Sequence record: PP601403.1
Length of the DNA stretch: 64,000 nt
Strand: one strand, 5' to 3'
Shown here: piece by piece, positions 29,768-64,000 of the stretch
Numbering within the stretch: position 1 is the stretch's first letter
Layout: the number at the start of each line of letters is the position of its first letter
Position numbers and translations under genes: made by a program
The notes under the pieces: model-generated
Database searches by the model: none
What the model was told of the DNA's origin: nothing
The model's input: only the letters and a program-made list of their open reading frames with translations

Positions 29768-32700
29768 ATGTATGTTAATAAGGACAGACCTTTACCGATA
29801 TTGGAAGATAAGAAAGATCCACTAGGTGGATTAATCAACTCTTTCATTAAGGTAGAACGAGAACGTGATAAGTTACAAGGTGATCCGGCTGGACAACTAA
29901 AACAGATCGCTGATTTTAAAACTAGAATGCAAAGTAAAGTTAATACTTTTAGTAGTGATCTAAATAGTTTAATTTTAGGTCATAGTGAAGCTAAAGGTGC
30001 TTTGCACGGTGAAACTAAAGAGACGGTTGGTTTAGGTAATAAAGATAACTTTGCTATGGGTACAATCGATGATCATATTTCTGGTCTTCGAAAGGATCTG
30101 TTCTGTAATCCAGAAGGTTTAAGTTATCTTGTTAAAGATCGTGTAACTATCGATCCCAATAGTTATCTTCCAGCCAAAGCTATCCCAATTGCTTCTGGTG
30201 GAATCTTTGGTGAAGTTCCTCAGATTACTTACCATATTAACAGAAATGATACAGAGCAGAGTTCTGCTAATCCTGTTAACTACATTGGTGAGTCTAACTG
30301 GGAGTTTTGTACACCAGCTGGAATGTTCATTTATCCAATGATGAACAACTCTCCTATTGTGGGAGTATTTTCAGACGCTAGTAGTGAAGCTGCTAAAACA
30401 GTTCAAACCCCTTGGGGTGGAACTAAAGTAAGATACTACGAGAAAGGCATCGTACCAAGACGCACCAGACCTGTCACAATGACTTCCGATAAGTTAGCTG
30501 GACAAGGTGGCGGAGAGATGCTCAGAAGCGCTGAGGCGTTGTTTGAACGTTCTACGGTGCACTATCTGGAAGGTGGAGTACAAAAGGTACGAGCATTAAA
30601 TAGAAATCATCTACCTTTTGATGTGTTTGATACTGAGGAAACAAATAACAAAGCCTTTGGTGGAGTTTTTGCTTCTAGGGAAAACATGTTGTATCACATT
30701 CTGGTGGACATGGATCTTGGTGAACTATTACCTATTGACCAGAGACCAATGCTTGATTACATTGCTAACCAAGTTTGGCCTCGTTCTTCCCAGTATCCGT
30801 TTGATGAAAAGAATCGCTCTAGATTTGACTTTATTGTTAATAGGGATTTACCTCCTATCCCGGATGATCCTTATAACGGTCCGATCAGACGTTTCTTTGA
30901 TAAAGCACTAAACTTTACTTATCCGAAAGATCCAGTAAAACGGCATCGTAATAAGTTCATGGAATATATCGACCGTGGCTTGAATGCGATGTGGCCTGTT
31001 AGTAGAACTTCTATCTATAGTAGAGAGGAGTTAGAACTGGTTGATATGGTAATTAACAAGTTCTGGCCAGGACCTCGTTCTGAGAGTCAAGTTGAAGGTG
31101 AGATTATCATCAAACTAGACTTTGTTATCAGATCAATGTTGGAACGTGATTATCCGTTATCTACTAAGAGTACTGAAGGTGATGAGTTAATCTACAAAAC
31201 CAATAAGAAGTTTAGTCAACAGTTCTTAGTTCCGGCTCACGGTAAGATTACTTCTAAGCTAAGAGATACTGGTACATTAGGTTTAGATATCAAACTTAAA
31301 GATATCATTGAACACGATGTAAGTGGTTACGGTAAACTCATCAGACATATCGATAAGACACGTTGTCAATTGGTCTCTTTTGCTTGGCGTAATCGACTGG
31401 AAGGTAAGGCGACTGTTAGGTTAAGTATTGGCTGGTACACTGTTAACAAGAGTAACTATGTTCACGCTTATCTTGATTTGGATTTACATTTTGATGATAA
31501 TGCAGGAACAGTTACCTCTACCGTAAACGTTGAAACAAGTGATAGTTGGAACCGTGTTAAACAGAAACTTAATGACAATCTGGAAGTAGTTACCGAAGGT
31601 TTGTTTAAGATGTACTCTGGGGATGTAAAAGAGCAACCTACCCACCCAGCGGTGATTGGTGGGGTGTTTGAAACCCAAGGTGGTCATATGAAGTCTTATA
31701 ACTTCTATAACCGCCAGTACATTGGTTACTATCGACATGCTGTAGGTTCTACCCTTGAGTTTATTAATCAAGAGAATAACCTTATTCCAACTCCAACTGA
31801 ATACAGTTACAACATCCAGTCTGTAATTAATGGTGATATGTTCTACGGTGATCACTTACGTCATATTCCGGTTAAAGTAGATACTACTAATAAAACAGTT
31901 CTGTATCTTACCCAAACCAGGGATTGGAAGAACAACTATCGTTGGGCTTTTGTAAACGTAGAGTCAGAAACACCTGTGGTTCAACCTAATGGTTATGTTG
32001 GTCCTAAACGGTTAAGTCGTAAATGGGTAGAGGATCGTAAAGCTTACGTTCCCAGTATGCTAATTGAGAACGATGAAACAAGCGCTACGATGAACATCTC
32101 CCCAGTGGTATTTAACAACTGGAATAACTTTACTGGTTACACTAACTACACCCTTGATGAGAACTCTGATCGTCACCCAATTACGGGTGTGAACGAAGTT
32201 CAATTGAGTGTAGAAATTACTAACTGGATTAAGAACCACGTTGTGGACTGGAAGAGTAGCTATAAACAGTACTTCTTACTGCAAGGTAATTTGTATTGGA
32301 TTGTACAAACTCTTGATAGCAAAGAGATGTTATCCGATGGAACAGATTGTTACTACGGTGTTATTAAGAGCTGTAGTATTCAAACTACCCAGGAGAACAT
32401 TAAAACTGTAATTACTAATAACTCTATTGCTAGTTCTATCACAGTGAGTAAAACCAATGTCAACACCAAAGCCAGTTTAGATATCGATACTGGTTCAGTG
32501 TTTGGGTTTGATCAATTAGCAGGACTGGATGTCTACGCTTTGAAAGTATTGGATGATGCAAGGGAAACTAAGTATGAGGTTATGCTTAACGTTGCACCTT
32601 TCAATAACTTCTATGTGGAAATGAGAATTAAGATTAACAAGCAAACTGGGGAAGTTATTTTCGAACCTAAGTATGATGCTGTTGATCCTATATTCCCTTA

Positions 32701-33289
32701 CAGTACAGCAATTGGTTATCAGATTGACTACGATTCATTGAACAAGTATGGAACTAAGATTCCTCATCGTGTTCATGTTAACTATCAATCACCTGTGATG
32801 TTGAAAAAGGGCTTATCTAGTTTTAGAAAGACACCTAATAACTACGGGTTCTTTACTAAGTCAGATGGCTTCGTTGTGATCAATGGAAGAGTCGAAGATA
32901 AAGTTCAAGGTATTCCTTTATATCCGTTGGGTTCTGCTATTACCATTGGTGGTGAAACATTAGTTATTAAACAACCCATTGATTTGTTTAGTAGTGATTT
33001 TCCCACTAATGACGAACTGTTTGTAACTAGAGATAGTAACAACCAGTTTAAGGTATTTGGGCGTTATAACAACAAAGGGTTTAATATTGAACCTAGTTTG
33101 AATTGTGTTCCTGTTGGTTTTATTAATGATGGTAAGTTTACTTATCACGATCCTAACAGTTATCGCAATTCACTGTTCCCTGTATTTGAGAATAAACGTC
33201 TCAATATAGGTAATGCTGGTCAATCTATTCCAGCATTCTACGGTAAACCCGGGTCTAAAACTCCTAATAACCTTTTCTTTAAGAAATAA
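29768..33289 (+). CDS. Large tail fibre/scaffold paralogue 4 containing a 24-aa repeat array
   Basis: ATG 9 nt after AAGGAG; HSEAKGALHGETKETVGLGNKDNF motif; gp131-like C-terminus. Confidence 0.65.
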   Translation: MYVNKDRPLPILEDKKDPLGGLINSFIKVERERDKLQGDPAGQLKQIADFKTRMQSKVNTFSSDLNSLILGHSEAKGALHGETKETVGLGNKDNFAMGTIDDHISGLRKDLFCNPEGLSYLVKDRVTIDPNSYLPAKAIPIASGGIFGEVPQITYHINRNDTEQSSANPVNYIGESNWEFCTPAGMFIYPMMNNSPIVGVFSDASSEAAKTVQTPWGGTKVRYYEKGIVPRRTRPVTMTSDKLAGQGGGEMLRSAEALFERSTVHYLEGGVQKVRALNRNHLPFDVFDTEETNNKAFGGVFASRENMLYHILVDMDLGELLPIDQRPMLDYIANQVWPRSSQYPFDEKNRSRFDFIVNRDLPPIPDDPYNGPIRRFFDKALNFTYPKDPVKRHRNKFMEYIDRGLNAMWPVSRTSIYSREELELVDMVINKFWPGPRSESQVEGEIIIKLDFVIRSMLERDYPLSTKSTEGDELIYKTNKKFSQQFLVPAHGKITSKLRDTGTLGLDIKLKDIIEHDVSGYGKLIRHIDKTRCQLVSFAWRNRLEGKATVRLSIGWYTVNKSNYVHAYLDLDLHFDDNAGTVTSTVNVETSDSWNRVKQKLNDNLEVVTEGLFKMYSGDVKEQPTHPAVIGGVFETQGGHMKSYNFYNRQYIGYYRHAVGSTLEFINQENNLIPTPTEYSYNIQSVINGDMFYGDHLRHIPVKVDTTNKTVLYLTQTRDWKNNYRWAFVNVESETPVVQPNGYVGPKRLSRKWVEDRKAYVPSMLIENDETSATMNISPVVFNNWNNFTGYTNYTLDENSDRHPITGVNEVQLSVEITNWIKNHVVDWKSSYKQYFLLQGNLYWIVQTLDSKEMLSDGTDCYYGVIKSCSIQTTQENIKTVITNNSIASSITVSKTNVNTKASLDIDTGSVFGFDQLAGLDVYALKVLDDARETKYEVMLNVAPFNNFYVEMRIKINKQTGEVIFEPKYDAVDPIFPYSTAIGYQIDYDSLNKYGTKIPHRVHVNYQSPVMLKKGLSSFRKTPNNYGFFTKSDGFVVINGRVEDKVQGIPLYPLGSAITIGGETLVIKQPIDLFSSDFPTNDELFVTRDSNNQFKVFGRYNNKGFNIEPSLNCVPVGFINDGKFTYHDPNSYRNSLFPVFENKRLNIGNAGQSIPAFYGKPGSKTPNNLFFKK
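30743..31102 (+). repeat. Five degenerate tandem units of exactly 72 nt (24 aa)
   Basis: Units start at 30743, 30815, 30887, 30959 and 31031; consensus xxx[LFIV]DxxxNxx[WYL]P plus 11 variable aa. Confidence 0.85.
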
Positions 33290-33295
33290 CTAATA

Positions 33296-33329
33296 AACTC
33301 TCTACTCCCTTAATTGGGAGTAGAGGGTT
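33296..33329. terminator. Bidirectional stem-loop terminator
   Basis: AACTCTCTACTCCC-TTAATT-GGGAGTAGAGGGTT. Confidence 0.85.
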
Positions 33330-33343
33330 ACTTTTATGTTTGT

Positions 33344-34297
33344 TTAATGTGCAGTACTGGTATCTTGCCCGTCACCTTGTTCTCTGTGAACGTGTTTGAG
33401 CATACTGATGTCACCAGCAGAAACGTCACCACTAGATTTCATATCACCGGCAGAACTAATGCCCGCTGTGTTAGTGAGTGTTCCTGATTGGGTCATATTC
33501 CCTTCATGGGTTATATCTCCCACTAGTTTAATAGTTGGAGATTTAATAGTAGCTGAAGCTGTCGCTGACATATCAAATGTTTCACATGCAGCGGTAATAC
33601 GTTTAGCCTTCAAACCGATATGTTCTTTACCATGAAATAGGATCTCGTCTTCACAAGAAGCTATAATCTTTTTCTTATCTATAGCAAATGTAGATTTCTC
33701 TTGATTTGAAAACGACCAGAAATGTTTTATAGAGTTTAGAATGAACATGTTCTGTTCACCATCTACTAAACTGAATCCACCTTCACCAGTATCTAGTGTT
33801 ATAGCGTAATTTGTTGCTTCGCCGTTACCCTGACCGGTTAGTAATTGAATCTTTTTAGTGTGGGAAGAGATTAAGAAGATATAATAGTTATCTGGAGTTA
33901 GAGGAGCGTCTTCTTTTACATTAGGGGTGGCCGAGAAAGCGTATATAACTGTCTCTAGACGAAGTGTACCGTCCATCCCGAAGTACATCCACCTAAACAA
34001 GTTCTGACCTTTAAACTTATAGACTACAACTTTACTACCTTTTCTGACATCAGGGGCTGTTATCCTATTGGTATTAAAAGGTAACCACTTCATCATTACA
34101 GCGTTAGAACTTAATCCAGAACTGGAGGTAGTATCTCCTGTCGGGGATTGTATTGTTACATCTTTCTTTTCTGCTTGGGCTACTACTTCTCCATCTGCTT
34201 CTGGATATAGAGAAGGAAGATATACCAATACTTCATCAGTGTCAGTAGCTTTATCCTCAGCTACTGTAGCAACACCATAACACTCTAATACATTCAT
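33344..34297 (-). CDS. Baseplate central spike (phiKZ gp164 / phi92 gp138 / P2 gpV-like)
   Basis: OB-fold-like N-terminus, beta-helix-like repeats and a terminal KHVH metal-binding apex motif. Confidence 0.8.
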   Translation of the reverse strand: MNVLECYGVATVAEDKATDTDEVLVYLPSLYPEADGEVVAQAEKKDVTIQSPTGDTTSSSGLSSNAVMMKWLPFNTNRITAPDVRKGSKVVVYKFKGQNLFRWMYFGMDGTLRLETVIYAFSATPNVKEDAPLTPDNYYIFLISSHTKKIQLLTGQGNGEATNYAITLDTGEGGFSLVDGEQNMFILNSIKHFWSFSNQEKSTFAIDKKKIIASCEDEILFHGKEHIGLKAKRITAACETFDMSATASATIKSPTIKLVGDITHEGNMTQSGTLTNTAGISSAGDMKSSGDVSAGDISMLKHVHREQGDGQDTSTAH

Positions 34298-34321
34298 AAC
34301 GAACATCCTTAAGAGGAATCT

Positions 34322-36805
34322 ATGATAACTGGTTTGATTTTGAAAAACTATTCTCCTCTTTATAAAAAGGGAGTTAAGTATATTGAGCTTGATACCAAAG
34401 AAATCTTTAACATTATCTTAGGTAGAAATGGCTTTGGTAAAACCTCATTACTACAAGAACTTTCTCCTCTGCCACCTGATAACGGAAGTTATGAACAAGG
34501 CGGTTATAAGGAAGTTAGGCTAGTTAATGAAAACGGAACTTATATCCTCAAATCATCAACTGGTAAATCTAGCCATCACGAGTTTATTCACAATGGTAAG
34601 AACCTTAACGAAGGTAACACACTATTGGTACAAAAGGAGTTAGTGAAGATTCACTTCAAGCTAACTAACAATGTCAAGAACATTTTAAGTGGATTGGATG
34701 TAAGAGATCTCTTTACTACATTAAGTACTGCTAGACGTAAAGATTTCTTAATGTCCATCAATCCTAACGATACAAGTTATGCATTGAAAATATTTGAGAA
34801 GCTTAAGTCTAACTTAAGCACTATCAAAGGCGGACTGAAAACACAGCGTCAACGTTTAGTATCCGAGGAATCAAGAGCTAAACAACTAGCTTCCCTTTCT
34901 CCAGAAGAGTTGCAAAAAGAAATTAATTTGATGGATAATCAAATTAAGAATGCGTTGTTAATTCACGGAATGTTTTCTAATGTTGAATTTGAACAATATG
35001 GTGATTTGAAAAACCAGATTGGTAACATTATCTCTAGATTAATGAGCAATGATGTTAGAATCAAATTCCCTAAGAGTACTTATCAAGAACAGTTAGATTT
35101 TCGTTATAAGGAGCTTGATCGTTCTGAAAAGATGAATCTAAAGTTAACTACTGTACTTGCTGAAGTAACTACTCAGTTACAAGGTTTGGATTCTTCTACT
35201 CAAAGTTTAGATGGTTATAAATCTAGACTGGAGATGATCGAGACTAGTTTGGAGTTATTTACTCAAGAAATCGATAATGTTCAAAGTTACTTTGTTAGTC
35301 ATGAGTTGTTTAATGACAATCAACTTTATAAGAACGAAGTAGTTTATCGTTATTGTAATGAACTGATTGATCAGCTACAACAAGTTAGTCGTGCTAGGGA
35401 TTTGGATATCACTAGTCAAGTGTTTGCTAAAGCTCAACAAGATTTGGTACACGCTACTAATGAGAAGAGTAATATTGATAGAGAGATAAGTTCTATCAAT
35501 CACTCTATTGAACACTTTAACAAAGCTGAATCAGTAGAATGTCCAGATTGTAATAACAAATTCAAATTAGGATTTGAGAAGTTTAACATTAAAGAACTTG
35601 AAGTTAAATGCAATGACTTAGTAAGAGTAAAGGAGAACCTCACAGAACGCATCCAGAAGCTCTCAGATTACATTGAGGCTAACGAAGACTGGTATTCGTC
35701 TATGCAAGGGTTCCATCGCTTCCTACGTCGATTGGAGAGCTCTGAAGTAATCTATCAGATTGTTGATCATTATCAAGTTGGTAAGAAAGATCTCACTAGT
35801 TTGATTGAATTGCTAAGAAGAACTATTCGTTATAATGATCTAGTTAAACAAATTGACTTGTTAGAGAAAGAACAAGTTCAAGTAAAAGCCCAAATTAACT
35901 TCTTGGAAAGTTCTGATATCAACGCATTGTTTCAACGAGCCGAAGATGTAGAGCGAGAGTTGGCTATTACACAACGTTCTATCGGTAGATTGAAAGTGGA
36001 GATTAAAGAACATCTGGAGTTAATCGATATTATCAATGGCGATGAACAACTAAGAGATCAACTACACATTCTGGTAGAAGAGTTAAAAGAGAAAGTTGAG
36101 AATAATGGGAAGTATAAAGTAAAGCAGAAAGTAGAACAACTTATTTCTGACTTAACTCCTCGTAAAGATCAACTTATAAGTAACTTAATTCGAGCAGAAT
36201 CTTTGAACTCTGTTATTCAGTCTATAGCCGATAATATCAAAGAACTGGAGAAACGCGAGAGACACACTTTACTGTTGATGGATGGTCTATCACCTGTTAA
36301 AGGTCTGATCGGGTATTTGATGAACGATTTCTTGGTTGCTGTAATTGCTAATATGAATGCCCTCATTCAACCTATTTGGAGTAATCGTTTACAGATACTC
36401 AATTGCTCAACTAGTAAGTCTGATGATGACGTTGATCTTAGTTACGTGTTCCCGGCAATAACTGGTGATAACAATACTCCGGTTAAAGATATTGGTGACT
36501 GTTCTAGCGGTGAACGTGATATTATCAATATGTCTTTCCGTTGGGTTATTCTTCAGTATTTGGGTAAGAACTGTGGGATGCCATTGATAATGGATGAAGT
36601 AGGTGCTGCGTTTGATGAACTACATAAAGGTAGGTTGTCAGCTTGGGTATCTGAGCAAAACCGTTTAGACAAAATACCGCAGTGTTTCCTTGTTAGTCAT
36701 AGTTATAAGGAATATGCTTCCCACGGAATGGCTAATATAATTGCCCTTAATACAGAAGGACTAACTGTTCCATTTAAAGTAAATAGTAAAACAATAATTA
36801 AATAA
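34322..36805 (+). CDS. sbcC: SbcC/Rad50-like SMC ATPase
   Basis: Walker A GRNGFGKT, coiled coils with a CPDC zinc hook, signature CSSGE, Walker B LIMDEVGAAFD. Confidence 0.9.
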   Translation: MITGLILKNYSPLYKKGVKYIELDTKEIFNIILGRNGFGKTSLLQELSPLPPDNGSYEQGGYKEVRLVNENGTYILKSSTGKSSHHEFIHNGKNLNEGNTLLVQKELVKIHFKLTNNVKNILSGLDVRDLFTTLSTARRKDFLMSINPNDTSYALKIFEKLKSNLSTIKGGLKTQRQRLVSEESRAKQLASLSPEELQKEINLMDNQIKNALLIHGMFSNVEFEQYGDLKNQIGNIISRLMSNDVRIKFPKSTYQEQLDFRYKELDRSEKMNLKLTTVLAEVTTQLQGLDSSTQSLDGYKSRLEMIETSLELFTQEIDNVQSYFVSHELFNDNQLYKNEVVYRYCNELIDQLQQVSRARDLDITSQVFAKAQQDLVHATNEKSNIDREISSINHSIEHFNKAESVECPDCNNKFKLGFEKFNIKELEVKCNDLVRVKENLTERIQKLSDYIEANEDWYSSMQGFHRFLRRLESSEVIYQIVDHYQVGKKDLTSLIELLRRTIRYNDLVKQIDLLEKEQVQVKAQINFLESSDINALFQRAEDVERELAITQRSIGRLKVEIKEHLELIDIINGDEQLRDQLHILVEELKEKVENNGKYKVKQKVEQLISDLTPRKDQLISNLIRAESLNSVIQSIADNIKELEKRERHTLLLMDGLSPVKGLIGYLMNDFLVAVIANMNALIQPIWSNRLQILNCSTSKSDDDVDLSYVFPAITGDNNTPVKDIGDCSSGERDIINMSFRWVILQYLGKNCGMPLIMDEVGAAFDELHKGRLSAWVSEQNRLDKIPQCFLVSHSYKEYASHGMANIIALNTEGLTVPFKVNSKTIIK

Positions 36806-36838
36806 ATACTGCTAGTTTAATATGTTATGTAACTGTAT

Positions 36839-36867
36839 CCGGTAAATACCTCACTGGTATTTACCGG
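36839..36867. terminator. Stem-loop terminator
   Basis: CCGGTAAATACC-TCACT-GGTATTTACCGG. Confidence 0.75.
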
Positions 36868-36889
36868 GATTTAACAGTCATTTTAACCT

Positions 36890-36918
36890 TTCTATATTTT
36901 TTCAAACATATATTATTA
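36890..36918 (+). promoter_or_regulatory. Early-type promoter variant
   Basis: TTCTATATTTTTTCAAACATATATTATTA aligns with the 7580/48051/51042 motif. Confidence 0.65.
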
Positions 36919-36991
36919 TCGTGTACCAGTAGGAGTGTTACTCTAAGTCACTGAAACAAACTGTATAACCAAACTTAAGGAAATGATCGAA

Positions 36992-37759: not shown

Positions 37760-37827
37760 AACAATACGACGACCTTGATGTTCTGAACAAGATATAATAA
37801 TTTTCATTTTCATAAGGTATTATTGCT

Positions 37828-38088
37828 ATGTTGCAGCAACTTCATTGCGTCGTTAATAATGATTACACTCTTTCTCCCGTTCCTTCTCCTGTTAGTAATG
37901 GTGTAATTGTTTCTTTAGCAGTTAGTTCCGATCCAGTGGGTGGAACAACTGGGGTGTTGAGTTGGAATAACCAACCGCAAGCATTCATCGTTTACGATCT
38001 AACTGGTACTCGTATTAATGGCTATACGCCTGTAAGTACAGACCCTGTTACCATTAGATCAATTGACAATATCATTCAGTCTTTGTAA
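37828..38088 (+). CDS. Hypothetical protein
   Basis: 86-aa ORF, AAGGT RBS, followed by a hairpin. Confidence 0.55.
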   Translation: MLQQLHCVVNNDYTLSPVPSPVSNGVIVSLAVSSDPVGGTTGVLSWNNQPQAFIVYDLTGTRINGYTPVSTDPVTIRSIDNIIQSL

Positions 38089-45713: not shown

Positions 45714-47882
45714 TTATCTCGAAAAGTTATTATGTTCCACAAACTCAGTATAATTAGTTTTAGAATATGGTTTATCGCAATTTATGGTTAAATTATTATA
45801 AATCTCAGCTGTAGTAGAGTAGTCATAACTTATTCCGATATCAAAGTTAGATACCCTACAGCCAGAAACTCTATAGTTATTTGAAGATAACCCAGCACCA
45901 GCTGCTTTATCACCGTCTTTTTCTACTAAAGTGTCTATAAAAATAGAATCATTAGAGACTAACGCCCCATAAGTCCCACCTGTGGTTTTTAATCTTACCG
46001 ATTTTATTTTAACAACCCCAGAAGAAGTAGAACTTGAGGTAAGAATTGGAATCCCTGAACTTGTGATGTAACCGCCACTCATATCGAAAATTAAAGCATC
46101 GTGTGTGGATTTGAATAATCCTACAGCTGTACATGTTATTTCTGATCCACCATCAATAACAATAATCCCGGTAGCCGCCAAAGAAACAATACCGTTACCA
46201 GTATTAATAATTTTAAAATTATTAATACTTAGAGTTTCTATATTACCAGAAACAACCACCAACCCAGCACCAGTTCCAGTAAGACTGTAAACAGAAGTAT
46301 TGGTTATACTCCCCCACCTAGAATTTTCTACCTCTATACCTCCGTAGTTGATTACATCAGGGATATTGCCCTTTATTCTTATCTCTGTGTTACTTACTTT
46401 GAAAAAGTCGGACCCGCCATAGAACTTTATTGGTGCCGCGTTTCCTATTGTTTCTATTGAACTGTTCACAATCTTAGTGTTAGCAGCCGAAGATGTCACA
46501 CCGATCCCGGTGGCATTCTTAATTGTCACATCGTTTATAACTGTATTAACACCGTATGTTTCTAGTGACGCTAAACAATTAGTACCGTCAATTAATGAGT
46601 TAGAAACAGAACAATTGGGCGCCTGAACCTTAATACCACGTTTTTTAACACCACTAACTTTAACATTGTTAATGTTAAACTTACTTCTATTATCTATATT
46701 AGTGTATCCGCCATGAAATAGCTGAATACCATCACTATCTTCGGCCGGATCTATACCGCCAGAACTGACATTTTTAACTGTACCAGAAATACTTACGTTC
46801 GGAGTAGAAGCGGCGTCGTTAAAAGCCACTAAAATCCCTCTTGCGGTCCCACCACTATCTCCAATCGTCCCATTAGATTTTGCCATTATATCGGAAACAT
46901 GCGCATTGATGCTAGCAGTTATGTTTTGGTTTATAACAGAACTAGAAGATTTATATAAAGCCACACCGATACACTGTTCTGTATCGGTATTATTTTTAAT
47001 ATCTGTTACAACACAATCTATCATGACCTTATCACTAGAAACCACCAAACCTACATCAGTAAATAAACCGTATTGTAAGTTATCGCATTCTCTACCATCT
47101 AAATTAGTTATTATTTTGGCAGGTCTGTCACAGTAAATTGCTGCGTTTAGTTCGGTCTGCATATTTAATCCAGTTGGTTTAAATATACTTTTAGCAGCAA
47201 GAAGAGATCCCTTTAAGTTAAGCTGTTTATTATGGATATAAACAGATCCAGGTAACCCATTTATCTCTTTATTTGTACAATACGCGAATGCTGCGTTTAT
47301 TGCCAGGGATGATTCTTTACCACTTTTTGCACCGAAGTATTCTATAAACATTTTTTGGTTTGGGTATAAAACTGCGGTATTCCCATTCGAAGCATCTAGT
47401 ATACCATACCCATCGGGAACACCTCCCTTTACAACCTCAAATAAAGCACCAGCGCGATCTGATAAAAACAAAAAAGATCCAATGTTAAATAGACCGGATT
47501 TTATTTCCTCTACCGAACTGACACCGATATAAGAAGAATTTTTCTCCACTACTTTCCAGCCTTTTTTACCACCTGGGGTAGGAGAACTATTAGCTTGAAC
47601 TACATAAGGTAATTTACCATTCCAACTGTACCAGTATCCATCTGTTGGATAAAAGACACATTTATCCCGATCACCAATACCTAAAGTTCCGCCACTAACA
47701 AAATCAAAACCTGCTGGTTTAAACCCAACATCTTTCAAAGCTTGTTGTACAGTTTTATGTTGTTTACCGAAACGATCCTGCCACAAAGCAGCAGGAGAGT
47801 TCATCGCATAATCAAACGAAATGGCGTTATCTTGTAAGTCTTCTGTTGCTGAAGATCCAATAGGGTTTTGTGTGAAAATCAT
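45714..47882 (-). CDS. Tailspike 1, putative polysaccharide depolymerase
   Basis: Shared N-terminal anchor (DLQDNAISFDYAMNS..WQDRFG), one Tail_spike_N-like domain (GFDFVSGGTL), and a parallel beta-helix body (DSDGIQ, KRGIKVQ). Confidence 0.85.
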   Translation of the reverse strand: MIFTQNPIGSSATEDLQDNAISFDYAMNSPAALWQDRFGKQHKTVQQALKDVGFKPAGFDFVSGGTLGIGDRDKCVFYPTDGYWYSWNGKLPYVVQANSSPTPGGKKGWKVVEKNSSYIGVSSVEEIKSGLFNIGSFLFLSDRAGALFEVVKGGVPDGYGILDASNGNTAVLYPNQKMFIEYFGAKSGKESSLAINAAFAYCTNKEINGLPGSVYIHNKQLNLKGSLLAAKSIFKPTGLNMQTELNAAIYCDRPAKIITNLDGRECDNLQYGLFTDVGLVVSSDKVMIDCVVTDIKNNTDTEQCIGVALYKSSSSVINQNITASINAHVSDIMAKSNGTIGDSGGTARGILVAFNDAASTPNVSISGTVKNVSSGGIDPAEDSDGIQLFHGGYTNIDNRSKFNINNVKVSGVKKRGIKVQAPNCSVSNSLIDGTNCLASLETYGVNTVINDVTIKNATGIGVTSSAANTKIVNSSIETIGNAAPIKFYGGSDFFKVSNTEIRIKGNIPDVINYGGIEVENSRWGSITNTSVYSLTGTGAGLVVVSGNIETLSINNFKIINTGNGIVSLAATGIIVIDGGSEITCTAVGLFKSTHDALIFDMSGGYITSSGIPILTSSSTSSGVVKIKSVRLKTTGGTYGALVSNDSIFIDTLVEKDGDKAAGAGLSSNNYRVSGCRVSNFDIGISYDYSTTAEIYNNLTINCDKPYSKTNYTEFVEHNNFSR

Positions 47883-55440: not shown

Positions 55441-55466
55441 ATTAATTCTATTTGTTTTTTGTTTCA

Positions 55467-55533: not shown

Positions 55534-57894
55534 ATGTCCAGTAACAAACCTTTCCCATCGCCAGATCTTGACGTATTTAAAGAAAACTCACTTATATTAG
55601 ACAACTTTGTCAACAGTCAAGATAATGAACATCCTGATCGTTTTAACAGAAAAAGACCAACTATCACAGGGATTATCAAAGAAGCTTTTAACGTCCGTAC
55701 TGACATTTCCAATATGAACGAAACTCTTATTGGTCAAAGTCGTTGGGACGCGGTTCCTAAGAATACCAGTTTGAGTTTAGGTGGTGATAACGGAGCTTTG
55801 AACAAACAAGCTCAAGCTTTGTTTAACCGAACTGAAATGTTGAAAGTTCACGCGCGAGAAGCACTTCGTAGAACTTATCAAGAAGTGGGTTTAAATCTGG
55901 TTGAAGGTTCTTTTGAGGAAGGCGGAACCTTAAACACTGTTACCGACATTCTACTTGAGGAGAAAACTGGTAAAGTTTATAGCTGGACTGGGAGTTTTCC
56001 GAAAGTTGTTAATAAAGGAACTTTACCAACTAGCGAAGCTGAATTTTTAGAACAAAATATTAAATCTCTTTATGGTGTGTTATCAAGAACTTTTGATAAC
56101 GACGGTATTGTTTTTAGCACTGTAGAGTTAGAAAATACTTCACTACCCATCGGAACAACAATAAGGGTTGATGGGAGGTATGGGGGGAGATTTAAAATTA
56201 TACCCAGAGGGTCGAAGGTCCCTGACGGGTACTTTTTACTATCGGCTGGGGGCAATAAACTCGCAGAGTTGCAATTTTCTAATATTCTTAAGCCAGAATG
56301 GTTTGGGGTTTTTTCCAACGCGCCAGGATCATTAGAATCTGAAACTGCTGATGGCTTAAATGCCATGTTTTCAGCATTAAAAAATAAAACCGGGTTGGTT
56401 TTTGAACTTAATGGTGTTTATTATGTTAATAAACAAATTACAGTTCCATTCTGCGAAACTACTTCTCCGCATATCCTAAGAATTTTTACTATTTCAGGCA
56501 AAAATTCTATAATAGCAAGCTCACACCAACAAAAAACACTAGTAATTAAAACTTCTTCAGATATCGGTCGGCGTAATTATGGATTTTCAATAGAGGATTT
56601 AACACTTAGAAATACCGTAGGTTGGGTAAAGGGTACTGGGCTTTATATCGAGGGGTCTTTTAGCCCTATATTTTCTAGGGTTTTTTGTCATAACTTTGAC
56701 AAATGTTTTGAAATTTACTGTTCATCCGAAGTAATATTTGATAAATGCGTCGCTACCACGTGCAACTATGGTGTGTATGGTGACCAGCTGGCTAATCCTA
56801 ATGGAGTTAATGGTAACGATTACTCTGTCATTACTTATAATCAGTTTGTTTGCTTCGGATTTGAAAAATGTGCCATTAGATCTAATGGTGGTGGTTCAGC
56901 CAAACATATTGGCGGGACTATGGCATCACCCGGGCTAGCAGCTAGGAGCTTTATACAATATCAAGGTTCTATAAGAGACGTTGTGATAGAAGACGTTCTC
57001 TTGGAATGTCAAAATGTCACATTGGATGGTTGTATATCATTCCTAGGGAATGGATTAAAACGTTCCATTAAAATATCTGGGGTGGTACAAGAGGTTATTT
57101 CTTCACCCAATAATGTTCTTATAAGGGCAGATGGTGTTGAAAATATTACTATAGAAAACATTCCATTTACGGTTCAAGGTGATATATTTGAACATATAAA
57201 ATATGTTCGCATTGACGGAGCCAAGGTTGTTTCCTTTATCAACAATGCTCGTTCTTATAGCTATTTGAATAAAGTAGACTTATATGATGTAGAAGAGGTT
57301 TTTGTCGATGGATACAATTTTATAGAAATTAACCCCCAATCTACGATAAGATACACAACTACGGGTGAACCGGTTGGAATATACACGCTTAATAGTTATC
57401 AGCCAGGTGAATTATTGGACCATACTGGGAAGGCTGGATTTAAATGTTCTACAGTGTATAATCGTTTACATTTTTCGGAATTAATGGCTTTTCTTGCATC
57501 TAAAAAACCAATGATTTCTTGTGCCAAAGTTTTAACTCTTAGTGACGCATTGGGCGTTAAATTGGTCAATGGTAATGTTAACAAGGGTCAGTATACCTTT
57601 GGCTGTATTCCTGGAAGATGGAAGACACAGTTTTTTGTATTCCCTACTTCTGGATTAACCGTCGTAGATAGCAGTGTGAATGGACCTGTATATTTTAATA
57701 TCGCAGGTTGTTCAGGAGTTTATATGTTAACGCAAGAAAATTTTTATAACCCGCAAATTGCGATCCCAGAGAGTGAATTAAATAACATCACCGGTTGGCC
57801 TATCTATAAAACATTGTACAATACAGATACTACGCCCAATACACCAATAGGTTGGGTTAGTACCTATGGTGGTAAAAAGGCTATTAAAATTTAA
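55534..57894 (+). CDS. Tailspike 2, putative depolymerase (786 aa from MSSNKPF)
   Basis: GAGGA RBS; anchor region, LGGDNGALNKQAQALFNRT module, Tail_spike_N-like domain (GSFEEGG), beta-helix body. Confidence 0.85.
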   Translation: MSSNKPFPSPDLDVFKENSLILDNFVNSQDNEHPDRFNRKRPTITGIIKEAFNVRTDISNMNETLIGQSRWDAVPKNTSLSLGGDNGALNKQAQALFNRTEMLKVHAREALRRTYQEVGLNLVEGSFEEGGTLNTVTDILLEEKTGKVYSWTGSFPKVVNKGTLPTSEAEFLEQNIKSLYGVLSRTFDNDGIVFSTVELENTSLPIGTTIRVDGRYGGRFKIIPRGSKVPDGYFLLSAGGNKLAELQFSNILKPEWFGVFSNAPGSLESETADGLNAMFSALKNKTGLVFELNGVYYVNKQITVPFCETTSPHILRIFTISGKNSIIASSHQQKTLVIKTSSDIGRRNYGFSIEDLTLRNTVGWVKGTGLYIEGSFSPIFSRVFCHNFDKCFEIYCSSEVIFDKCVATTCNYGVYGDQLANPNGVNGNDYSVITYNQFVCFGFEKCAIRSNGGGSAKHIGGTMASPGLAARSFIQYQGSIRDVVIEDVLLECQNVTLDGCISFLGNGLKRSIKISGVVQEVISSPNNVLIRADGVENITIENIPFTVQGDIFEHIKYVRIDGAKVVSFINNARSYSYLNKVDLYDVEEVFVDGYNFIEINPQSTIRYTTTGEPVGIYTLNSYQPGELLDHTGKAGFKCSTVYNRLHFSELMAFLASKKPMISCAKVLTLSDALGVKLVNGNVNKGQYTFGCIPGRWKTQFFVFPTSGLTVVDSSVNGPVYFNIAGCSGVYMLTQENFYNPQIAIPESELNNITGWPIYKTLYNTDTTPNTPIGWVSTYGGKKAIKI
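55856..55878 (+). repeat. 23-nt exact repeat in three tailspike genes (also 58348..58370 and 62121..62143)
   Basis: GAGAAGCACTTCGTAGAACTTAT, encoding (R)EALRRTY. Confidence 0.9.
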
Positions 57895-57902
57895 ATAATT
57901 TA

Positions 57903-57935
57903 AACTCTACTTACTCCTAAGGAGTAAGTAGAGTT
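57903..57935. terminator. Stem-loop terminator
   Basis: AACTCTACTTACTCCT-A-AGGAGTAAGTAGAGTT; differs by 1 nt from 45661..45694. Confidence 0.9.
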
Positions 57936-57955
57936 ATTTTATATTATTTATTTTA

Positions 57956-58001
57956 TTGATTTTATGTACTTTGTTATTAACAGAGAAGGTAAGAACTTAT
58001 G
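57956..58001 (+). promoter_or_regulatory. Late-promoter/leader shared with 61704..61750
   Basis: TTGATTTTATGTACTTT and TAACAGAGAAGGTAA blocks are identical in both copies. Confidence 0.75.
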
Positions 58002-60872
58002 AATTCCACTGGTAATGATTTAGAATCCAATGACATCTTGGATTTTGAAGATAACTGTGAAAACTTAGATGTTTTAATGAATGCTGATCAAGACTATTGG
58101 ACTGATCGTCTTGGTAATAAACGTCCTACAATTGATTACGCTTTGCGTATGGCTGGATTTACACCAGCTGGATTTGATTTCACCACAGGTGGTGTTTTAA
58201 AGAATGGTGACAGAAACAAGTGTGTATTTAACCAAGCTGATCAAACTTGGTATAGTTGGTCAGGAGATCTTCCTTATAATGTAATTGCTGGAAGTACACC
58301 TGGGGAAGGTTGGAAAGTTGTTAATAGGAATGCTTTAACTATAGCAAGAGAAGCACTTCGTAGAACTTATCAGGAAGTTGGTTTAAACCTAGTTGAAGGT
58401 TCTTTTGAACAAGGCGGAGTGGTTTCCAGCATTACAGATGTGCTCTTGCGCGAGCGTGATGGTAAGGCTTATGGCTACACTGGGATCTTTCCGTTCACTG
58501 TAACCGGATCACAAATAGCTCCAGATCCACGCCTGTGGAAAGATAAAAGTCCCGTTAAAATAACTTTTAAACAACCGCAATTAGGTAGTGTAGAACGTGG
58601 TCTTCAAGACAAGTTGACAGATAACAGAACTACCTTGGATTATGGTGCTGTCGGTGACGGAGTGAATAACGACACTTCCGCATTCGTCATCATGTCAGCA
58701 CTGGCCTCAAACGTTCCTATTGATGGGCTGGGTAAGATCTATGTTGTTACCGATATTCCTCAGTCGGGGATATTTTTCAATGGAATGTGGAAAGTAGGTT
58801 CCACTCTTACACCATTCGAATACGTTGGTGCTATCAGAGCTGGTAATAATGTCATTGCGATCGGACCTAATGCGGCACCAAACTGTATTTCTGACGACTT
58901 CATAGCTATTGGTAACGGAGCGGCGCAATCCGTAGTTAGTGCTAGAAACGGCATTGCTATTGGCAAAAACTCAATGATGAGTAATATTTGGGGTCGCCAT
59001 AATCTAGGGTTTGGACTAGAGGCGCTACGGTCGCTGGTTGGGTCTCCTACTGATCAGATAGTAGGGTCTCGCAACATTGGCATGGGTGGTAACGCCGGTC
59101 GTTTTCTCACCGGTTCTCGTAACTTAATCTTTGGGCGAGATGCTGGACATAACCTCACTGACGCTCACCTTAACCTTATCATGGGTGTAGGATCGGTGAT
59201 GGGTGATGGACCCAACACGCTCAATCCAGGAGTTATTGAAAACCAAACACCTTTAACACCATCCTATACAGTTATGTTGGGTGCAGAATCTGGAAAATTT
59301 TGGAATGCCGGTTATGGTGTTGGTGTAGGACATCAAGTTCTGATGAACGTTAAATCTGACACCGGAATGGTGGGAGTTGGTGCTAACGCGTTCAGTCTAC
59401 ATCAATCAGACATGAGTCACTGGGGTACGACACAGCAATTAGTGAATCTTACCGGCACTTATGCTCAAAGTGCCGGTACATTAATAACTGTCACAATAAC
59501 TGGTCATGGGTTAGTTTCTGGATATCGGGCATTATTACGGTTCACCACTGGTCCAAATGGTGATGTCACCTTTAACGACGATAACTGGTTCGTGGTTACA
59601 GTTGTCGACGCCAACACCTTTACTATTTTATCTCCAGTGAGTTCTGTCGCCACCGGAAATGTTTCAGTTTCTAAGATAGCGACTACTATTCCGTATAGCG
59701 CATTAACTGGTGGCTGCGTGGGTGTAGGACGTGAGGTCGGTAACGGTGTTTCAAATTACAGATCAACAGGGATGGGTGATCGCGTCGGTAGTAAGGGTTT
59801 AGGAGTAGAAACATCTGGGTTCGGATATAACGTTTTCTTAAACTACGTCCCTGGTGCTGGTTCTAGTTCGTTTGGAGCTTATTCACAACAGAGTAACAAC
59901 AATGCTAGTGGGAACACTAGTTTTGGTGTTTTGACCATGGCTGGTAATGTCATTACTGGCGTTAGTAACTCCGCATTTGGACCTCAAGCACTAAGATACG
60001 TGTCAACAGGCGGGAACAACGCGGCTTTCGGTGGGAACGCTTTACGTGGACTAACTACTGGCAACTATAACTCTGCCTTTGGACCGGATTCCTTAAGGTT
60101 TGGTGTCGGTGGAATACTGGACCACAACTTCAATAACTGCGGTGGGTTCGGGTATCAAGCCTACGTGTCAGGGGATAACCAAATTCAGTTGGGCAATTCA
60201 GCCACCACTACCTATGTGTTTGGTACTGTCCAAAACCGTTGTGATGCTCGCGATAAGACCGATGTGCGTGATACTGAGCTCGGGATCGATTTTATCATGG
60301 GGTTGCGTCCAGTTGACTACCGACTGGATATGCGTGACGACTACGTTAAACAATATCCAGATCGACCAGAGTGTCCTGTTGAACCAACACCTCCGATAAA
60401 ACCAGAACCTGGACCGGTGGTTGAGACTACGGGAATAAATGATAGCAGTTCACAACCTGATGATTATAATGTTAAACTCCAGATGTACGAGAGCGAGTAT
60501 GTTGTATACGAAAATCTTTTATCTAAATATAAGACAGATTTGGCACAACACGAAAAATGTCTTGTTGAGTGGGAAATAGAGTGTAAGAAAATCAAAGCGT
60601 TCAACGAGCACGTATTTACTGGTGAAGGAAAGGACGGTAGTAAAGTTAGGACTCGTTTCCACCATGGGTTTATTGCGCAAGAAGTAAAGGCCCTTTCTGA
60701 TAAGTTAGGTTTAGACTTTGGCGGTTATCAAGATCACACTATTAATGGCGGCGCTGACGTTAGAACGCTTGGTTATGATGAATTCATCCCCTGTACAGTA
60801 AAAGCCATACAGACGTGTTGGAATCGTCTTGACGAACTAGAACAACGTATAGCTTCATTAGAAGAGAAATAA
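57999..60872 (+). CDS. Tail fibre/tailspike 3 with YadA-like head repeats and a C-terminal peptidase S74 intramolecular chaperone
   Basis: Anchor plus two Tail_spike_N-like domains, DYGAVGDG, IAIGxNA repeats, and CDARDK...LRPVDY...HHGFIAQEV...KAIQ. Confidence 0.9.
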   Translation: MNSTGNDLESNDILDFEDNCENLDVLMNADQDYWTDRLGNKRPTIDYALRMAGFTPAGFDFTTGGVLKNGDRNKCVFNQADQTWYSWSGDLPYNVIAGSTPGEGWKVVNRNALTIAREALRRTYQEVGLNLVEGSFEQGGVVSSITDVLLRERDGKAYGYTGIFPFTVTGSQIAPDPRLWKDKSPVKITFKQPQLGSVERGLQDKLTDNRTTLDYGAVGDGVNNDTSAFVIMSALASNVPIDGLGKIYVVTDIPQSGIFFNGMWKVGSTLTPFEYVGAIRAGNNVIAIGPNAAPNCISDDFIAIGNGAAQSVVSARNGIAIGKNSMMSNIWGRHNLGFGLEALRSLVGSPTDQIVGSRNIGMGGNAGRFLTGSRNLIFGRDAGHNLTDAHLNLIMGVGSVMGDGPNTLNPGVIENQTPLTPSYTVMLGAESGKFWNAGYGVGVGHQVLMNVKSDTGMVGVGANAFSLHQSDMSHWGTTQQLVNLTGTYAQSAGTLITVTITGHGLVSGYRALLRFTTGPNGDVTFNDDNWFVVTVVDANTFTILSPVSSVATGNVSVSKIATTIPYSALTGGCVGVGREVGNGVSNYRSTGMGDRVGSKGLGVETSGFGYNVFLNYVPGAGSSSFGAYSQQSNNNASGNTSFGVLTMAGNVITGVSNSAFGPQALRYVSTGGNNAAFGGNALRGLTTGNYNSAFGPDSLRFGVGGILDHNFNNCGGFGYQAYVSGDNQIQLGNSATTTYVFGTVQNRCDARDKTDVRDTELGIDFIMGLRPVDYRLDMRDDYVKQYPDRPECPVEPTPPIKPEPGPVVETTGINDSSSQPDDYNVKLQMYESEYVVYENLLSKYKTDLAQHEKCLVEWEIECKKIKAFNEHVFTGEGKDGSKVRTRFHHGFIAQEVKALSDKLGLDFGGYQDHTINGGADVRTLGYDEFIPCTVKAIQTCWNRLDELEQRIASLEEK

Positions 60873-60877
60873 TATTG

Positions 60878-60906
60878 CTAAGTACCTCTCCAAGAGAGGT
60901 ACTTAG
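60878..60906. terminator. Bidirectional stem-loop terminator
   Basis: CTAAGTACCTCTC-CAA-GAGAGGTACTTAG. Confidence 0.85.
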
Positions 60907-60907
60907 T

Positions 60908-61177
60908 TTATTTTTGATTGGGGTTTTTCATAGTCCCTATTAACGTATTGGAAACCTTAAGGAATCCCGGTAGCTGATCTTTACCAACAACACAGTTATT
61001 CTTCCAATTGAGATTAAATCCACCACATTGTAACCGTTCATGCTCTGGAATATCTGTAGCTTGTTGATCGTGATTTTCTCCACATACCTGCTGTGTTATT
61101 TCTGTCACTGGTGTATATTCATCCTTTCGAAGAAAGATTTGTTTAAACGAGGTTATAACACTCTGGATGATGTTCAT
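60908..61177 (-). CDS. Hypothetical protein
   Basis: 89 aa with a strong AAGGAG RBS on the minus strand. Confidence 0.65.
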   Translation of the reverse strand: MNIIQSVITSFKQIFLRKDEYTPVTEITQQVCGENHDQQATDIPEHERLQCGGFNLNWKNNCVVGKDQLPGFLKVSNTLIGTMKNPNQK

Positions 61178-61253
61178 GGTTTCTCCTTGTCACTAATAAC
61201 GCACTACACATCATGCATTGAAAAGTACCGAATAAATATAATGGTGACCTTTA

Positions 61254-61655
61254 ATGACTTTACAAGATTTCCTTTCTCACTATCAATACCAACCTGATCC
61301 TGTTAAGAAAGACATTTGGATTATTCCTAATAAAGTTAACAATCAATATCTTGACGATTGTGATGGTTTCTGTTTAGGAATACTTTACTATGTACTTGCT
61401 AATAGTTCACTTCTTACTTTCTGGTATTTGTTACTATTTACAGATACAAGAATTTATTACGTAATTACTAGTAAAAACATTGGTCATGTGGTATTGAGAT
61501 ATAAAGGTCTTTATATTGACACTTATTCAAAAGCTTGGGTGACTAAAGAACAGATGTTAGATTATGGACATAAGTTCCATTGGTCTAGAATGTTCTTTTT
61601 CTGGCAAGTTGCTTTGAAAATGTTAATTAGTAAGATCTTAGTTAAAATTAAATAG
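61254..61655 (+). CDS. Transglutaminase-like cysteine peptidase-fold protein
   Basis: DDCDGFC, GHVVL and YIDT give a Cys-His-Asp order. Confidence 0.6.
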   Translation: MTLQDFLSHYQYQPDPVKKDIWIIPNKVNNQYLDDCDGFCLGILYYVLANSSLLTFWYLLLFTDTRIYYVITSKNIGHVVLRYKGLYIDTYSKAWVTKEQMLDYGHKFHWSRMFFFWQVALKMLISKILVKIK

Positions 61656-61664
61656 TAATAACTT

Positions 61665-61694
61665 CTCTACTTCTCCAATTAAGGAGAAGTAGAG
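61665..61694. terminator. Stem-loop terminator
   Basis: CTCTACTTCTCC-AATTAA-GGAGAAGTAGAG. Confidence 0.8.
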
Positions 61695-61703
61695 GATCTT
61701 TAA

Positions 61704-61750
61704 TTGATTTTATGTACTTTAGTCAATAACAGAGAAGGTAAAGAATTATG
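61704..61750 (+). promoter_or_regulatory. Late-promoter/leader shared with 57956..58001
   Basis: Same two conserved blocks; TATG 34 nt before the start. Confidence 0.75.
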
Positions 61751-64000
61751 AGTTTTAATACAGGTAATGAACTTCCAAGTTTAGATGAGCGTGACCTATA
61801 CGACAATGCTCTTAATCTTGACAAAGCTATGAACAGTACCGATCCAACTTGGACAGACAGATTTGGAGTTGAGAAACCAACTATCGACACCGCTTTGAAA
61901 TCAACAGGGTTCATGCCAGCTGGGTTTGACTTTGTAACTGGCGGAACTCTCCAACCAGGTGATCGTAATAAAGCTGTTTATAATCCAGCACCTAACGGTG
62001 ATAATAATTGGTATCGTTGGAATGGTGCATTTCCGAAGGAAATTGCTGCTAACAGTCAACCTAATCCTAAAGATGAAAATAATTGGGTTCCTGTTTTAAT
62101 TAAAACAAGCTCAGTTGAAAGAGAAGCACTTCGTAGAACTTATTTAGAAGCTGGGTATAATCTTGTTCCTGGTAGTTTTGAGCAAGGAGCTGTTATAACT
62201 TCAGCTACTGACGTAGTACTTCATGAGAAAACAGGGAAGTGTTATTCTGGACCTATTGGTAATGTTTCCGCTGGGACCAACCCGACTGTCGGTGGGCAAT
62301 TTGTAGATGTTTCGCGTGTAACTAGCGTATCTGGAGGATTTAGATATGTAAGGACTCCAAAACCATTCGGGTCAGGGTTTTTATTGACCGATGTAAACCA
62401 AGTTGTGCTCCACTCTGATGGGATGTGGTATTACTATACTGGAACTTTGCCGCACGCTAATACCGAGCCTGAACCAATCTTTGAAGACGGGTGGAGGAAT
62501 GCTGGCCTTCTTGTTGGCGATAAGTATAACAGCCCATTAAACTACGGGGCCAAAGGAGATGGTGTCACCGGAGATGCCGTGGCAATCGGTTTGGCAATTA
62601 AGAACAATAATGACGTAGACATGACCTCACTACGATGGAGGATTGAAGACACTATCATCGTTGGGTCACGAAAAAATATCCGTGTAGACGGAAGTGTTCT
62701 TATATTAGACTGCGCCGGAAAAGTAGCTTTTAAAACAGAGGAGGGATCTCAGCTTATCTCCTTTACTGGAAGATCGTCACTGGTGTTGGGGGAGGCATTG
62801 GCGTTTATTCAACTAAGCGGCAAGACTGACTCGCCTACTGTGTTTGAAGACTACACACGTCTTGTTAACCTGATAGGTCTTACTCTTTCATCTCAGGATA
62901 TTGAATACTCGCTCATTTTCGATAAGTGCGTAAACGGGGTAACTATTGACGGGTGTCGTTTCACGACACGTAACGCAATCCTGTCTAATGGGAAATCAGT
63001 AGAGATCCACTGCTCTAACTCAATCTTCTTTGGGTGGAGCGTTGCTGGGTCAGTCGGCATAAAGATTACCTCATCCGGCAATGGCAACTCTTTCTCAGAG
63101 GGGTGGCATTTTGTAAACTGCTCAATGGATGCGTTTGAGACTACTATTAAAGTTCGCGATATCTTTGTCCTGACTATAGCTAATAGCTGGCTCACCTCCA
63201 AGAGAGGGGGTAAGGTGCTTGAATTCGACCGACCGGCCACCCTTAGCAACGCATCTATCGTAATAGGCGGTTGCGCTATTCTTGGGGAGATCTTCTTTAA
63301 CGACTCTCCTGGCGGGTACAACTACGATGCCAAGATTAACTCATGCACATTTACTGCCTTTGGTCGTATTACCATCGGTAGGGAGTGTGCAGGGATCGAT
63401 ATAGATGATGTGAGTTTCAAAAACGGAAGCGGGTACGCGATTCGGTTTCCTACAACATTTTCTACTACAGCTATCTCCATCACAAAATCAAGAGTGGATG
63501 GTACTTATACCGGTATAGTGGAGAACTTTTCAAACTATTCAGGCGGTGTATGTGTTAAAGATTGTAAAGGTAAAGTTTCATCTACCTTGGCAATGAAGGA
63601 GGATTCCGCATACTCCATGTTGTCATCTCAGTGGACACCTAGATTCGCTGTTTCGGCAAGTAGTATGGCAGGAGTTTCGGTATCAACTAATGAGTTCTTG
63701 TTTTCAACAGTTCCTGATTTCCCCTCTGGTGCCCACGGGATTATTAAAGGGCAGATAAGGACAACCAGTGCAACAGTTAACGGGCTGGCTTTCAAGGTTT
63801 ACTTAGATGGCTCAGAGATGATATCAGGTACAGGGTGGTCTACAAGGGAGGTGTACGCAGCCAATGGGTTGGCTATTATTGATATACCTATCTTCATTCC
63901 AGAGTCATATCAAGGCGTTAAATTACTGTCCGTCCAGTACGTGGGTGCAGGTAGCATAACTACCGCGCAAGGCTCTTATATACGGTTGGAGAAGTCATAA
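61748..64000 (+). CDS. Tailspike 4, putative depolymerase
   Basis: Anchor plus three Tail_spike_N-like domains, NYGAKGDG pectate-lyase-like start and a beta-helix; the stop codon falls at the window end. Confidence 0.85.
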   Translation: MSFNTGNELPSLDERDLYDNALNLDKAMNSTDPTWTDRFGVEKPTIDTALKSTGFMPAGFDFVTGGTLQPGDRNKAVYNPAPNGDNNWYRWNGAFPKEIAANSQPNPKDENNWVPVLIKTSSVEREALRRTYLEAGYNLVPGSFEQGAVITSATDVVLHEKTGKCYSGPIGNVSAGTNPTVGGQFVDVSRVTSVSGGFRYVRTPKPFGSGFLLTDVNQVVLHSDGMWYYYTGTLPHANTEPEPIFEDGWRNAGLLVGDKYNSPLNYGAKGDGVTGDAVAIGLAIKNNNDVDMTSLRWRIEDTIIVGSRKNIRVDGSVLILDCAGKVAFKTEEGSQLISFTGRSSLVLGEALAFIQLSGKTDSPTVFEDYTRLVNLIGLTLSSQDIEYSLIFDKCVNGVTIDGCRFTTRNAILSNGKSVEIHCSNSIFFGWSVAGSVGIKITSSGNGNSFSEGWHFVNCSMDAFETTIKVRDIFVLTIANSWLTSKRGGKVLEFDRPATLSNASIVIGGCAILGEIFFNDSPGGYNYDAKINSCTFTAFGRITIGRECAGIDIDDVSFKNGSGYAIRFPTTFSTTAISITKSRVDGTYTGIVENFSNYSGGVCVKDCKGKVSSTLAMKEDSAYSMLSSQWTPRFAVSASSMAGVSVSTNEFLFSTVPDFPSGAHGIIKGQIRTTSATVNGLAFKVYLDGSEMISGTGWSTREVYAANGLAIIDIPIFIPESYQGVKLLSVQYVGAGSITTAQGSYIRLEKS

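Follow-up and report, generated by a model that had tools for sequence, protein, structure and literature searches.

In siphophages, a single helix of the distal tail protein was found to hold a tailspike trimer in two cryo-electron microscopy (cryo-EM) studies published in 2025 and 2026 (PMC12724387, PMC13612043). In phage Sf11, residues 4-59 of the tailspike gp13 form helices, three of which are brought together by one helical adaptor region of gp17, the distal tail protein, to give a helical bundle, and residues E129, E136, E147 and E152 of gp17 were named as contacts (PDB 9OCC; PMC12724387). In parallel, a helix of the distal tail protein gp20 of the Aeromonas siphophage Avs-1 was seen by cryo-EM to bundle with helices at the N-terminus of spike gp43 (PMC13612043). 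For jumbo phages, no description of such sockets was found in the literature, and the paper reporting phage AerS_266 notes only that its spikes share N-termini. The present analysis concerns the final 64 kb of the record of the Aeromonas jumbo phage ACP1 (genus Ferozepurvirus; PP601403.1), a stretch of 64,000 nucleotides called the window hereafter, in which a protein of 1176 amino acids (aa), putatively located at the tail tip or baseplate, contains an array of six 24-aa units. On balance, the units of this array are probably tailspike sockets of the same type as in Sf11 gp17, arranged in tandem within a baseplate protein of a jumbo phage.

The array spans positions 30728-31159 on the plus strand, corresponding to residues 324-467 of its carrier protein. 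Units 1 to 5 carry the pattern hydrophobic-D-x-x-hydrophobic-N-x-x-hydrophobic-P followed by a proline-rich stretch, namely LDYIANQVWP in unit 1 (30752-30781), FDFIVNRDLP in unit 2 (30824-30853), FDKALNFTYP in unit 3 (30896-30925), IDRGLNAMWP in unit 4 (30968-30997) and VDMVINKFWP in unit 5 (31040-31069), all on the plus strand. On the same strand, unit 6 is degenerate and reads LDFVIRSMLE (31112-31141), with a proline four residues later. The motifs start at residues 332, 356, 380, 404 and 428 of the carrier, an exact 24-aa period that can be read directly from the translation, and the degenerate sixth copy (LDFVIR) starts at residue 452.

The 10-residue motif was fixed from the array before any comparison with other proteins. 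It is present five times in the carrier, where shuffled sequences lead to an expectation of 0.014 copies, and six times in the gene set of the window (0.13 expected). The sixth copy, IDNAINACWP (29089-29118, plus strand), is a lone socket-like motif in the 862-aa virion protein encoded upstream (27121-29709); it is kept in the Ferozepurvirus PS1 and its status is less certain. On the contrary, the bare six-residue pattern is common, with 10 further copies in the ~20,000 aa of the window against 7.4 expected, and thus does not by itself stand above chance. The original prediction had pointed to hydrophobic-D-x3-N hexamers in the array and in the anchors of four tailspikes. All nine were recovered in place, and its caution that a match of six residues could be fortuitous is borne out by these counts.

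A word search across 5.8 billion proteins retrieved ten carriers of the array only, all 1171-1174 aa long, with the same six units and invariant motif positions, so that the conservation of the motif is directly visible; in every unit it is kept under purifying selection across the clade. The array was not found in the orthologues from ZPAH34, AerS_266, CF8, AhC3_1, D3, OBP and Kc263, and is a clade-specific insertion. Tandem Repeats Finder did not detect any DNA-level repeat in the array, from which it follows that the units are old and diverged. A protein atlas search gave no usable match. When the array alone was folded by AlphaFold2 (AF2) from its single sequence, six helices were obtained, one per unit, with a mean predicted local distance difference test (pLDDT) score of 39 and no confident packing, which is weak evidence.

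The link to the solved structures comes from both partners of the docking interface. The first 106 residues of tailspike 4 (TSP4), the nearest of the four tailspikes of the window to Sf11 gp13, match the gp13 N-terminus over residues 5-108 (PDB 9OCC) with an E-value of 9.8e-9, a homology that is observed directly. In gp17 as translated from the genome record, E129, E136, E147 and E152 are all glutamates, and residues 145-154 read LDEVVNRELP. This is the sole copy in gp17 of the 10-residue motif of the array; it lies at the end of the adaptor helix in the solved structure, and ~0.003 copies are expected per protein of that size. Given that gp13 itself displays the hexamer IDEVVN and gp17 LDEVVN, socket and anchor helices do share a hexamer in a solved structure, as had been guessed for the array in the original prediction.

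Sf11 thus resembles the ACP1 locus by its homologous tailspike anchor and by an adaptor helix that ends in the motif of the array, unit 2 being the nearest. The two systems are otherwise built differently. In the siphophage Sf11, a Dit-type distal tail protein bears one socket, a helix of ~28 residues, at the end of its N-terminal domain or close by, whereas the array would consist of six shorter tandem sockets, carried in a jumbo myophage by a loop of a baseplate protein that is not homologous to the former. In the same way, Avs-1, which is set beside the array by description only, shares with ACP1 an Aeromonas host and with Sf11 the helix-bundle mode of docking, but it differs from the array in having a single socket, carried by the distal tail protein.

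On the model of Sf11 and Avs-1, each unit of the array would form a short amphipathic helix that ends in the 10-residue motif and is followed by a proline-rich linker. The unit helix would join the anchor helices, three in number, at the N-termini of a tailspike trimer to make a helical bundle, and the sockets, inserted into a loop of the putative peripheral baseplate protein, would mount the five anchor-bearing tailspikes of the phage. Both the physical binding of the array helices to the anchors and the number of spikes that each unit could hold are features that we infer from sequence comparison.

The mounting of several different tailspikes on one baseplate through N-terminal docking modules also occurs in the kuttervirus CBA120, whose branched complex of tailspikes TSP1-4 Plattner et al. 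reportedly described in 2019, a study cited in PMC13612043. CBA120 shares with ACP1 the Pfam family Tail_spike_N, which was found in the tailspikes of the window. Unlike what is proposed for the array, CBA120 branches through gp10-like XD domains within its own TSP2 and TSP4, and is not known to use helix sockets of a baseplate protein.

The four tailspikes of the window have paralogous N-terminal anchor domains, and a fifth anchor lies elsewhere in the genome, five being the number found in ACP1 and in every other Ferozepurvirus. Tailspike 1 (TSP1; 722 aa; 45714-47882, minus strand) contains its anchor in residues 1-51 (47730-47882), with the hexamer FDYAMN. Tailspike 2 (TSP2; 55534-57894, plus strand; anchor 55534-55683; hexamer LDNFVN) likely starts at ATG 55534, a start made likelier by the alignment with the other anchors, and the TTG at 55459 that opens its longest open reading frame (ORF) is probably wrong. 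Tailspike 3 (TSP3; 957 aa; 57999-60872, plus strand) carries its anchor at 57999-58151, with the hexamer LDVLMN. Finally, TSP4 (750 aa, complete; 61748-64000, plus strand; anchor 61748-61903; hexamer LDKAMN) ends where the ACP1 record ends. The hexamer lies at residues 23-29 in TSP1, TSP3 and TSP4; in TSP2 it falls at residue 47 when the TTG frame is used and at residue 22 when counting begins at ATG 55534. All four anchors show hydrophobic-D-x-x-hydrophobic-N, and D25 and N29 are invariant in 35 anchors. The anchors being paralogous and these two residues invariant, the four tailspike hexamer matches amount to one observation, not four.

In TSP3, the anchor is accompanied by an endosialidase N-terminal extension (PF12218) and, at the C-terminus, by an intramolecular chaperone of the Peptidase_S74 family (PF13884). 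The TSP4-type anchor (61748-62077, the first 110 aa, at >80% identity) is found joined to ~45 different C-terminal parts in public metagenomes (P0012-P0066), among which are SGNH esterase, pectate-lyase-like beta-helix and Peptidase_S74 chaperone domains. Judged from these sequences, receptor-binding domains have clearly been exchanged here while the anchor stayed the same. Of the five frames that bear an anchor, one is short (131, 148 or 373 aa) in some Ferozepurviruses, as observed in PS1 (163590-163745), PS2 (166796-166948) and pAEv1810 (183886-184041, all in record coordinates), which suggests truncated or recently recombined tailspike genes.

Across jumbo-phage relatives, sockets were observed together with anchors. 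Ferozepurviruses display five canonical units, one degenerate unit and one site in the 862-aa protein, and have five anchors. The Chaoshanviruses ZPAH34, AerS_266 and CF8 have three sockets, two of which are ~37-aa cassettes in loops of the orthologue of the array carrier while the third is appended to its upstream neighbour, and four to five anchors. AhC3_1 has one anchor and one socket, the latter being the sole motif match among ORFs totalling 113,076 aa. Nine relatives without any anchor (D3, OBP, Kc263, AH04, Survivor, pEt-SU, Sureiya, N1M2 and SXP01) did not show any socket in the two orthologous genes. This association between sockets and anchors, a direct observation, holds across 12 jumbo-phage lineages.

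The Chaoshanvirus and AhC3_1 cassettes are comparable to the array in that they reside in the same two baseplate proteins, carry the same motif and belong to genomes with one to five homologous anchors. They differ from it as single cassettes of ~37 aa found at other insertion points, in separate loops or at a C-terminus. In ZPAH34 (L001) and in L010, L011 and L012, the cassette is built of an acidic lead, a helix, N-N-x-W-P-R and a proline-rich tail with D-G-x-T-D-P, over ~37 aa. The socket cassettes are found in a conserved baseplate protein, at two distinct loops, and at the C-terminal end of its neighbour, and they behave like portable modules. The orthologue becomes shorter as sockets rise: it measures 1689-2676 aa where there are none and 1661 aa where there is one, falling to 1309 aa when two are present and to 1176 aa with the 5-6 sockets of the array, which suggests that detachable spikes and their sockets replaced a covalently attached receptor-binding extension.

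The same motif was found in siphophages, at the C-terminal end of the gene that follows the tape measure in HC8A, seszw, CF65a and LC3I3, EhrS_59 showing a variant of it. In a sample of 80 IMG/VR loci holding the anchor profile, 69 had at least 4.7 kb of upstream DNA, and the motif was present in all of them (69/69), ~4 kb upstream and at the end of an ORF of 150-200 aa, that is, at a distal-tail-protein C-terminus. The remaining 11 loci, which lacked the motif, all had less than 4 kb of upstream DNA. In these loci, motif matches numbered 86 in 533,329 aa on the gene strand versus 9 in 467,521 aa on the opposite strand, and 54 distinct socket sequences of distal tail proteins carry the motif.

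Two tandem C-terminal sockets, exactly 20 aa apart, were observed in 16 IMG/VR distal tail proteins (L111, L114, L118, L119, L121-L123, L125-L127, L131, L137, L140, L142, L143 and L156), so that socket arrays do exist elsewhere. Like the array, these are tandem and show a helix followed by N-x-x-W-P; unlike it, they have two units only, a 20-aa period, a position at the C-terminus of a distal tail protein and a genome with one anchor. As for the Jerseyvirus SETP3 (L064, 22397-22756), its tailspike has a diverged hexamer, IDYATN. No socket motif was found in the SETP3 genome, whose tailspike N-terminus is too diverged for a clean negative control, and this lineage may use a different attachment. 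The homology of TSP4 with gp13, the motif in the gp17 helix, the 69 IMG/VR loci and the cassettes of the sister phages argue together, at the level of sequence, in favor of the earlier proposal that the array helices may serve as docking sites for the anchor helices.

Several results weigh against reading the array as a set of tailspike sockets. The five canonical units descend from one ancestral unit and, having arisen by duplication, count as about one independent occurrence of the motif. The array helices are ~11-21 residues long versus ~28 for the Sf11 adaptor helix. The AF2 fold of the full 1176-aa protein, obtained from an 11-row alignment, is unreliable (mean pLDDT 26), and so is that of the array alone with its score of 39. 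Profile statistics fall on both sides. When a hidden Markov model (HMM) of the Chaoshanvirus cassettes was run against 3041 ORFs, the distal-tail-protein C-termini of the Pseudomonas siphophages CF65a and LC3I3 came first (E 6e-4 and 2e-3) and the array protein ranked next with a borderline E of 0.046. An HMM made from distal-tail-protein sockets only ranked the Chaoshanvirus cassettes first, with weak E-values, and did not retrieve the array. In profile-profile comparison (hhalign), the array units gave probabilities of 93% with distal-tail-protein sockets, 88% with the cassettes and 13% with the anchors, values that are inflated, the motif itself having been used to set the register of the sequences compared.

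Such borderline scores, together with the commonness of the hexamer and the shared origin of the units, could be accounted for by a chance or convergent resemblance. The array would then be a helical-repeat insertion with another structural role in the baseplate, for example spacing, hinging or touching a neighbouring baseplate protein, and the tailspikes would dock elsewhere. This explanation is unlikely in view of the rarity of the extended motif in the window gene set and of the restriction of the socket motif to anchor-bearing lineages. In addition, the array sits in the orthologue of a protein that bears clear socket cassettes in sister genera, and the positions kept among its diverged units (D, N, an aromatic residue and P) coincide with those kept among the distal-tail-protein sockets.

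The socket interpretation also has to face the counts. Socket and anchor numbers nowhere match one to one: the complete genomes of two-socket siphophages (L111, L122, L123, L125 and L131) encode one anchor-bearing tailspike each, in CF8 three sockets stand against four anchors, each with the hexamer LDKALN, and the 6 to 7 sockets of Ferozepurviruses exceed their five anchors. Moreover, a spacing of 24 aa between the six sockets may leave too little room for six trimers. The surplus of sockets in the siphophages and Ferozepurviruses, along with the tight spacing of 20-24 aa, would be explained if the units were related to sockets without holding one spike each, neighbouring helices either cooperating, for example two per bundle, or packing as a helical domain that offers one or two sites. 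We consider this arrangement a tentative possibility; the retention of the full motif in each unit by purifying selection fits independent sites slightly better.

These numbers bear directly on the original prediction, according to which each unit would be a docking site and the receptor repertoire would expand with the number of units. Neither a code of one spike per unit nor such an expansion is supported, in light of the two-socket genomes with one anchor, of CF8, of the variation among TSP4-type anchors and of a unit number that is constant in the 10 carriers. Across genomes, sockets are encountered only in lineages with anchors, and the two numbers do not follow each other one to one.

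A stricter version, in which each unit would be specific for one anchor class, read in two variable positions of the hexamer, draws on a few suggestive pairs: unit 1 (LDYIAN) with TSP1 (FDYAMN), unit 3 (FDKALN) with TSP4 (LDKAMN) and the site of the 862-aa protein (IDNAIN) with TSP2 (LDNFVN). Socket and anchor hexamers are also nearly identical in Sf11 and in the IMG/VR locus L167, and the five canonical units of Ferozepurviruses equal their five anchors in number. However, three first-position matches out of four would arise by chance with a probability of ~13%, a rough estimate, and the four identical anchor hexamers of CF8 face three different sockets. In TSP4-type anchors the first variable position is occupied by Q, K or E, whereas unit 3 does not vary, and in most IMG/VR socket-anchor pairs the variable positions are not the same. 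A search for a one-to-one hexamer code in CF8, in the IMG/VR pairs and between TSP4-type anchors and unit 3 did not find one; such a code is very unlikely. Quite unlikely as well is the broader idea of a programmable hub, in which the five canonical units would each be specific for one of five conserved anchor classes, so that a single baseplate protein would hold five different tailspikes in a fixed order. Under this idea, insertion or deletion of cassettes of 24-37 aa, in place of a covalent receptor-binding C-terminus, would be the means by which jumbo phages acquire or lose receptor specificities.

The carrier of the array is encoded at 29759-33289 on the plus strand. Its 1176-aa length is counted from a TTG codon, and the true start is likely ATG 29768 (1173 aa), three codons downstream, which is favoured because the relatives are annotated to start there; as for TSP2, the longest-ORF TTG start at 29759 is probably wrong. 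The product is 99.9% identical to an Aeromonas phage ACP1 protein and 94-98% identical to its counterparts in AVP1, pAEv1810, PS1 and PS2; all five are jumbo phages of the genus Ferozepurvirus with genomes of ~235 kb each. The gene is flanked by paralogous virion structural genes (25784-27058 and 27121-29709) and by a baseplate assembly gene (33344-34306, phrog_3216). Along with this gene context, PHROG tail-protein matches at the N-terminus and the RefSeq label "tail protein" of the PS1 and pAEv1810 orthologues support a virion tail protein, and the carrier is accordingly described as a putative peripheral baseplate or tail-tip protein.

A Pfam search of the carrier did not find any family. 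The protein matches phrog_17273, it has as orthologues baseplate proteins of jumbo phages that are 1300-2700 aa long, and homology to the Dit-type distal tail proteins of siphophages was not found. Since it shares only the candidate socket with these, it is not a distal tail protein. A leucine-rich repeat of the BspA type was considered on account of the 24-aa period and of the labels of some orthologues, and was rejected: the pattern of the units differs from the LxxLxLxxN consensus, Pfam finds no leucine-rich repeat in the carrier, and the BspA label refers to C-terminal extensions of the orthologues that are missing here. The three consecutive virion genes at 25784-27058, 27121-29709 and 29759-33289 have in common a paralogous N-terminal domain (phrog_3573, phrog_13857, phrog_2163), which may be their common part for attachment to the baseplate.

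To the docking of a tailspike trimer on a single distal-tail-protein helix, the present analysis adds a simple sequence signature of the socket, present in every testable anchor-bearing locus. It also adds evidence for the socket as a portable cassette that appears inserted in baseplate proteins of jumbo myophages as well, and a natural tandem version with six candidate units. If the binding of the array to the anchors is confirmed, it would account for the presence of four or five different tailspikes on these jumbo phages and would make socket-anchor pairs predictable from sequence. The array would then also provide a minimal module of 24 aa with which to study the mounting and exchange of receptor-binding proteins.

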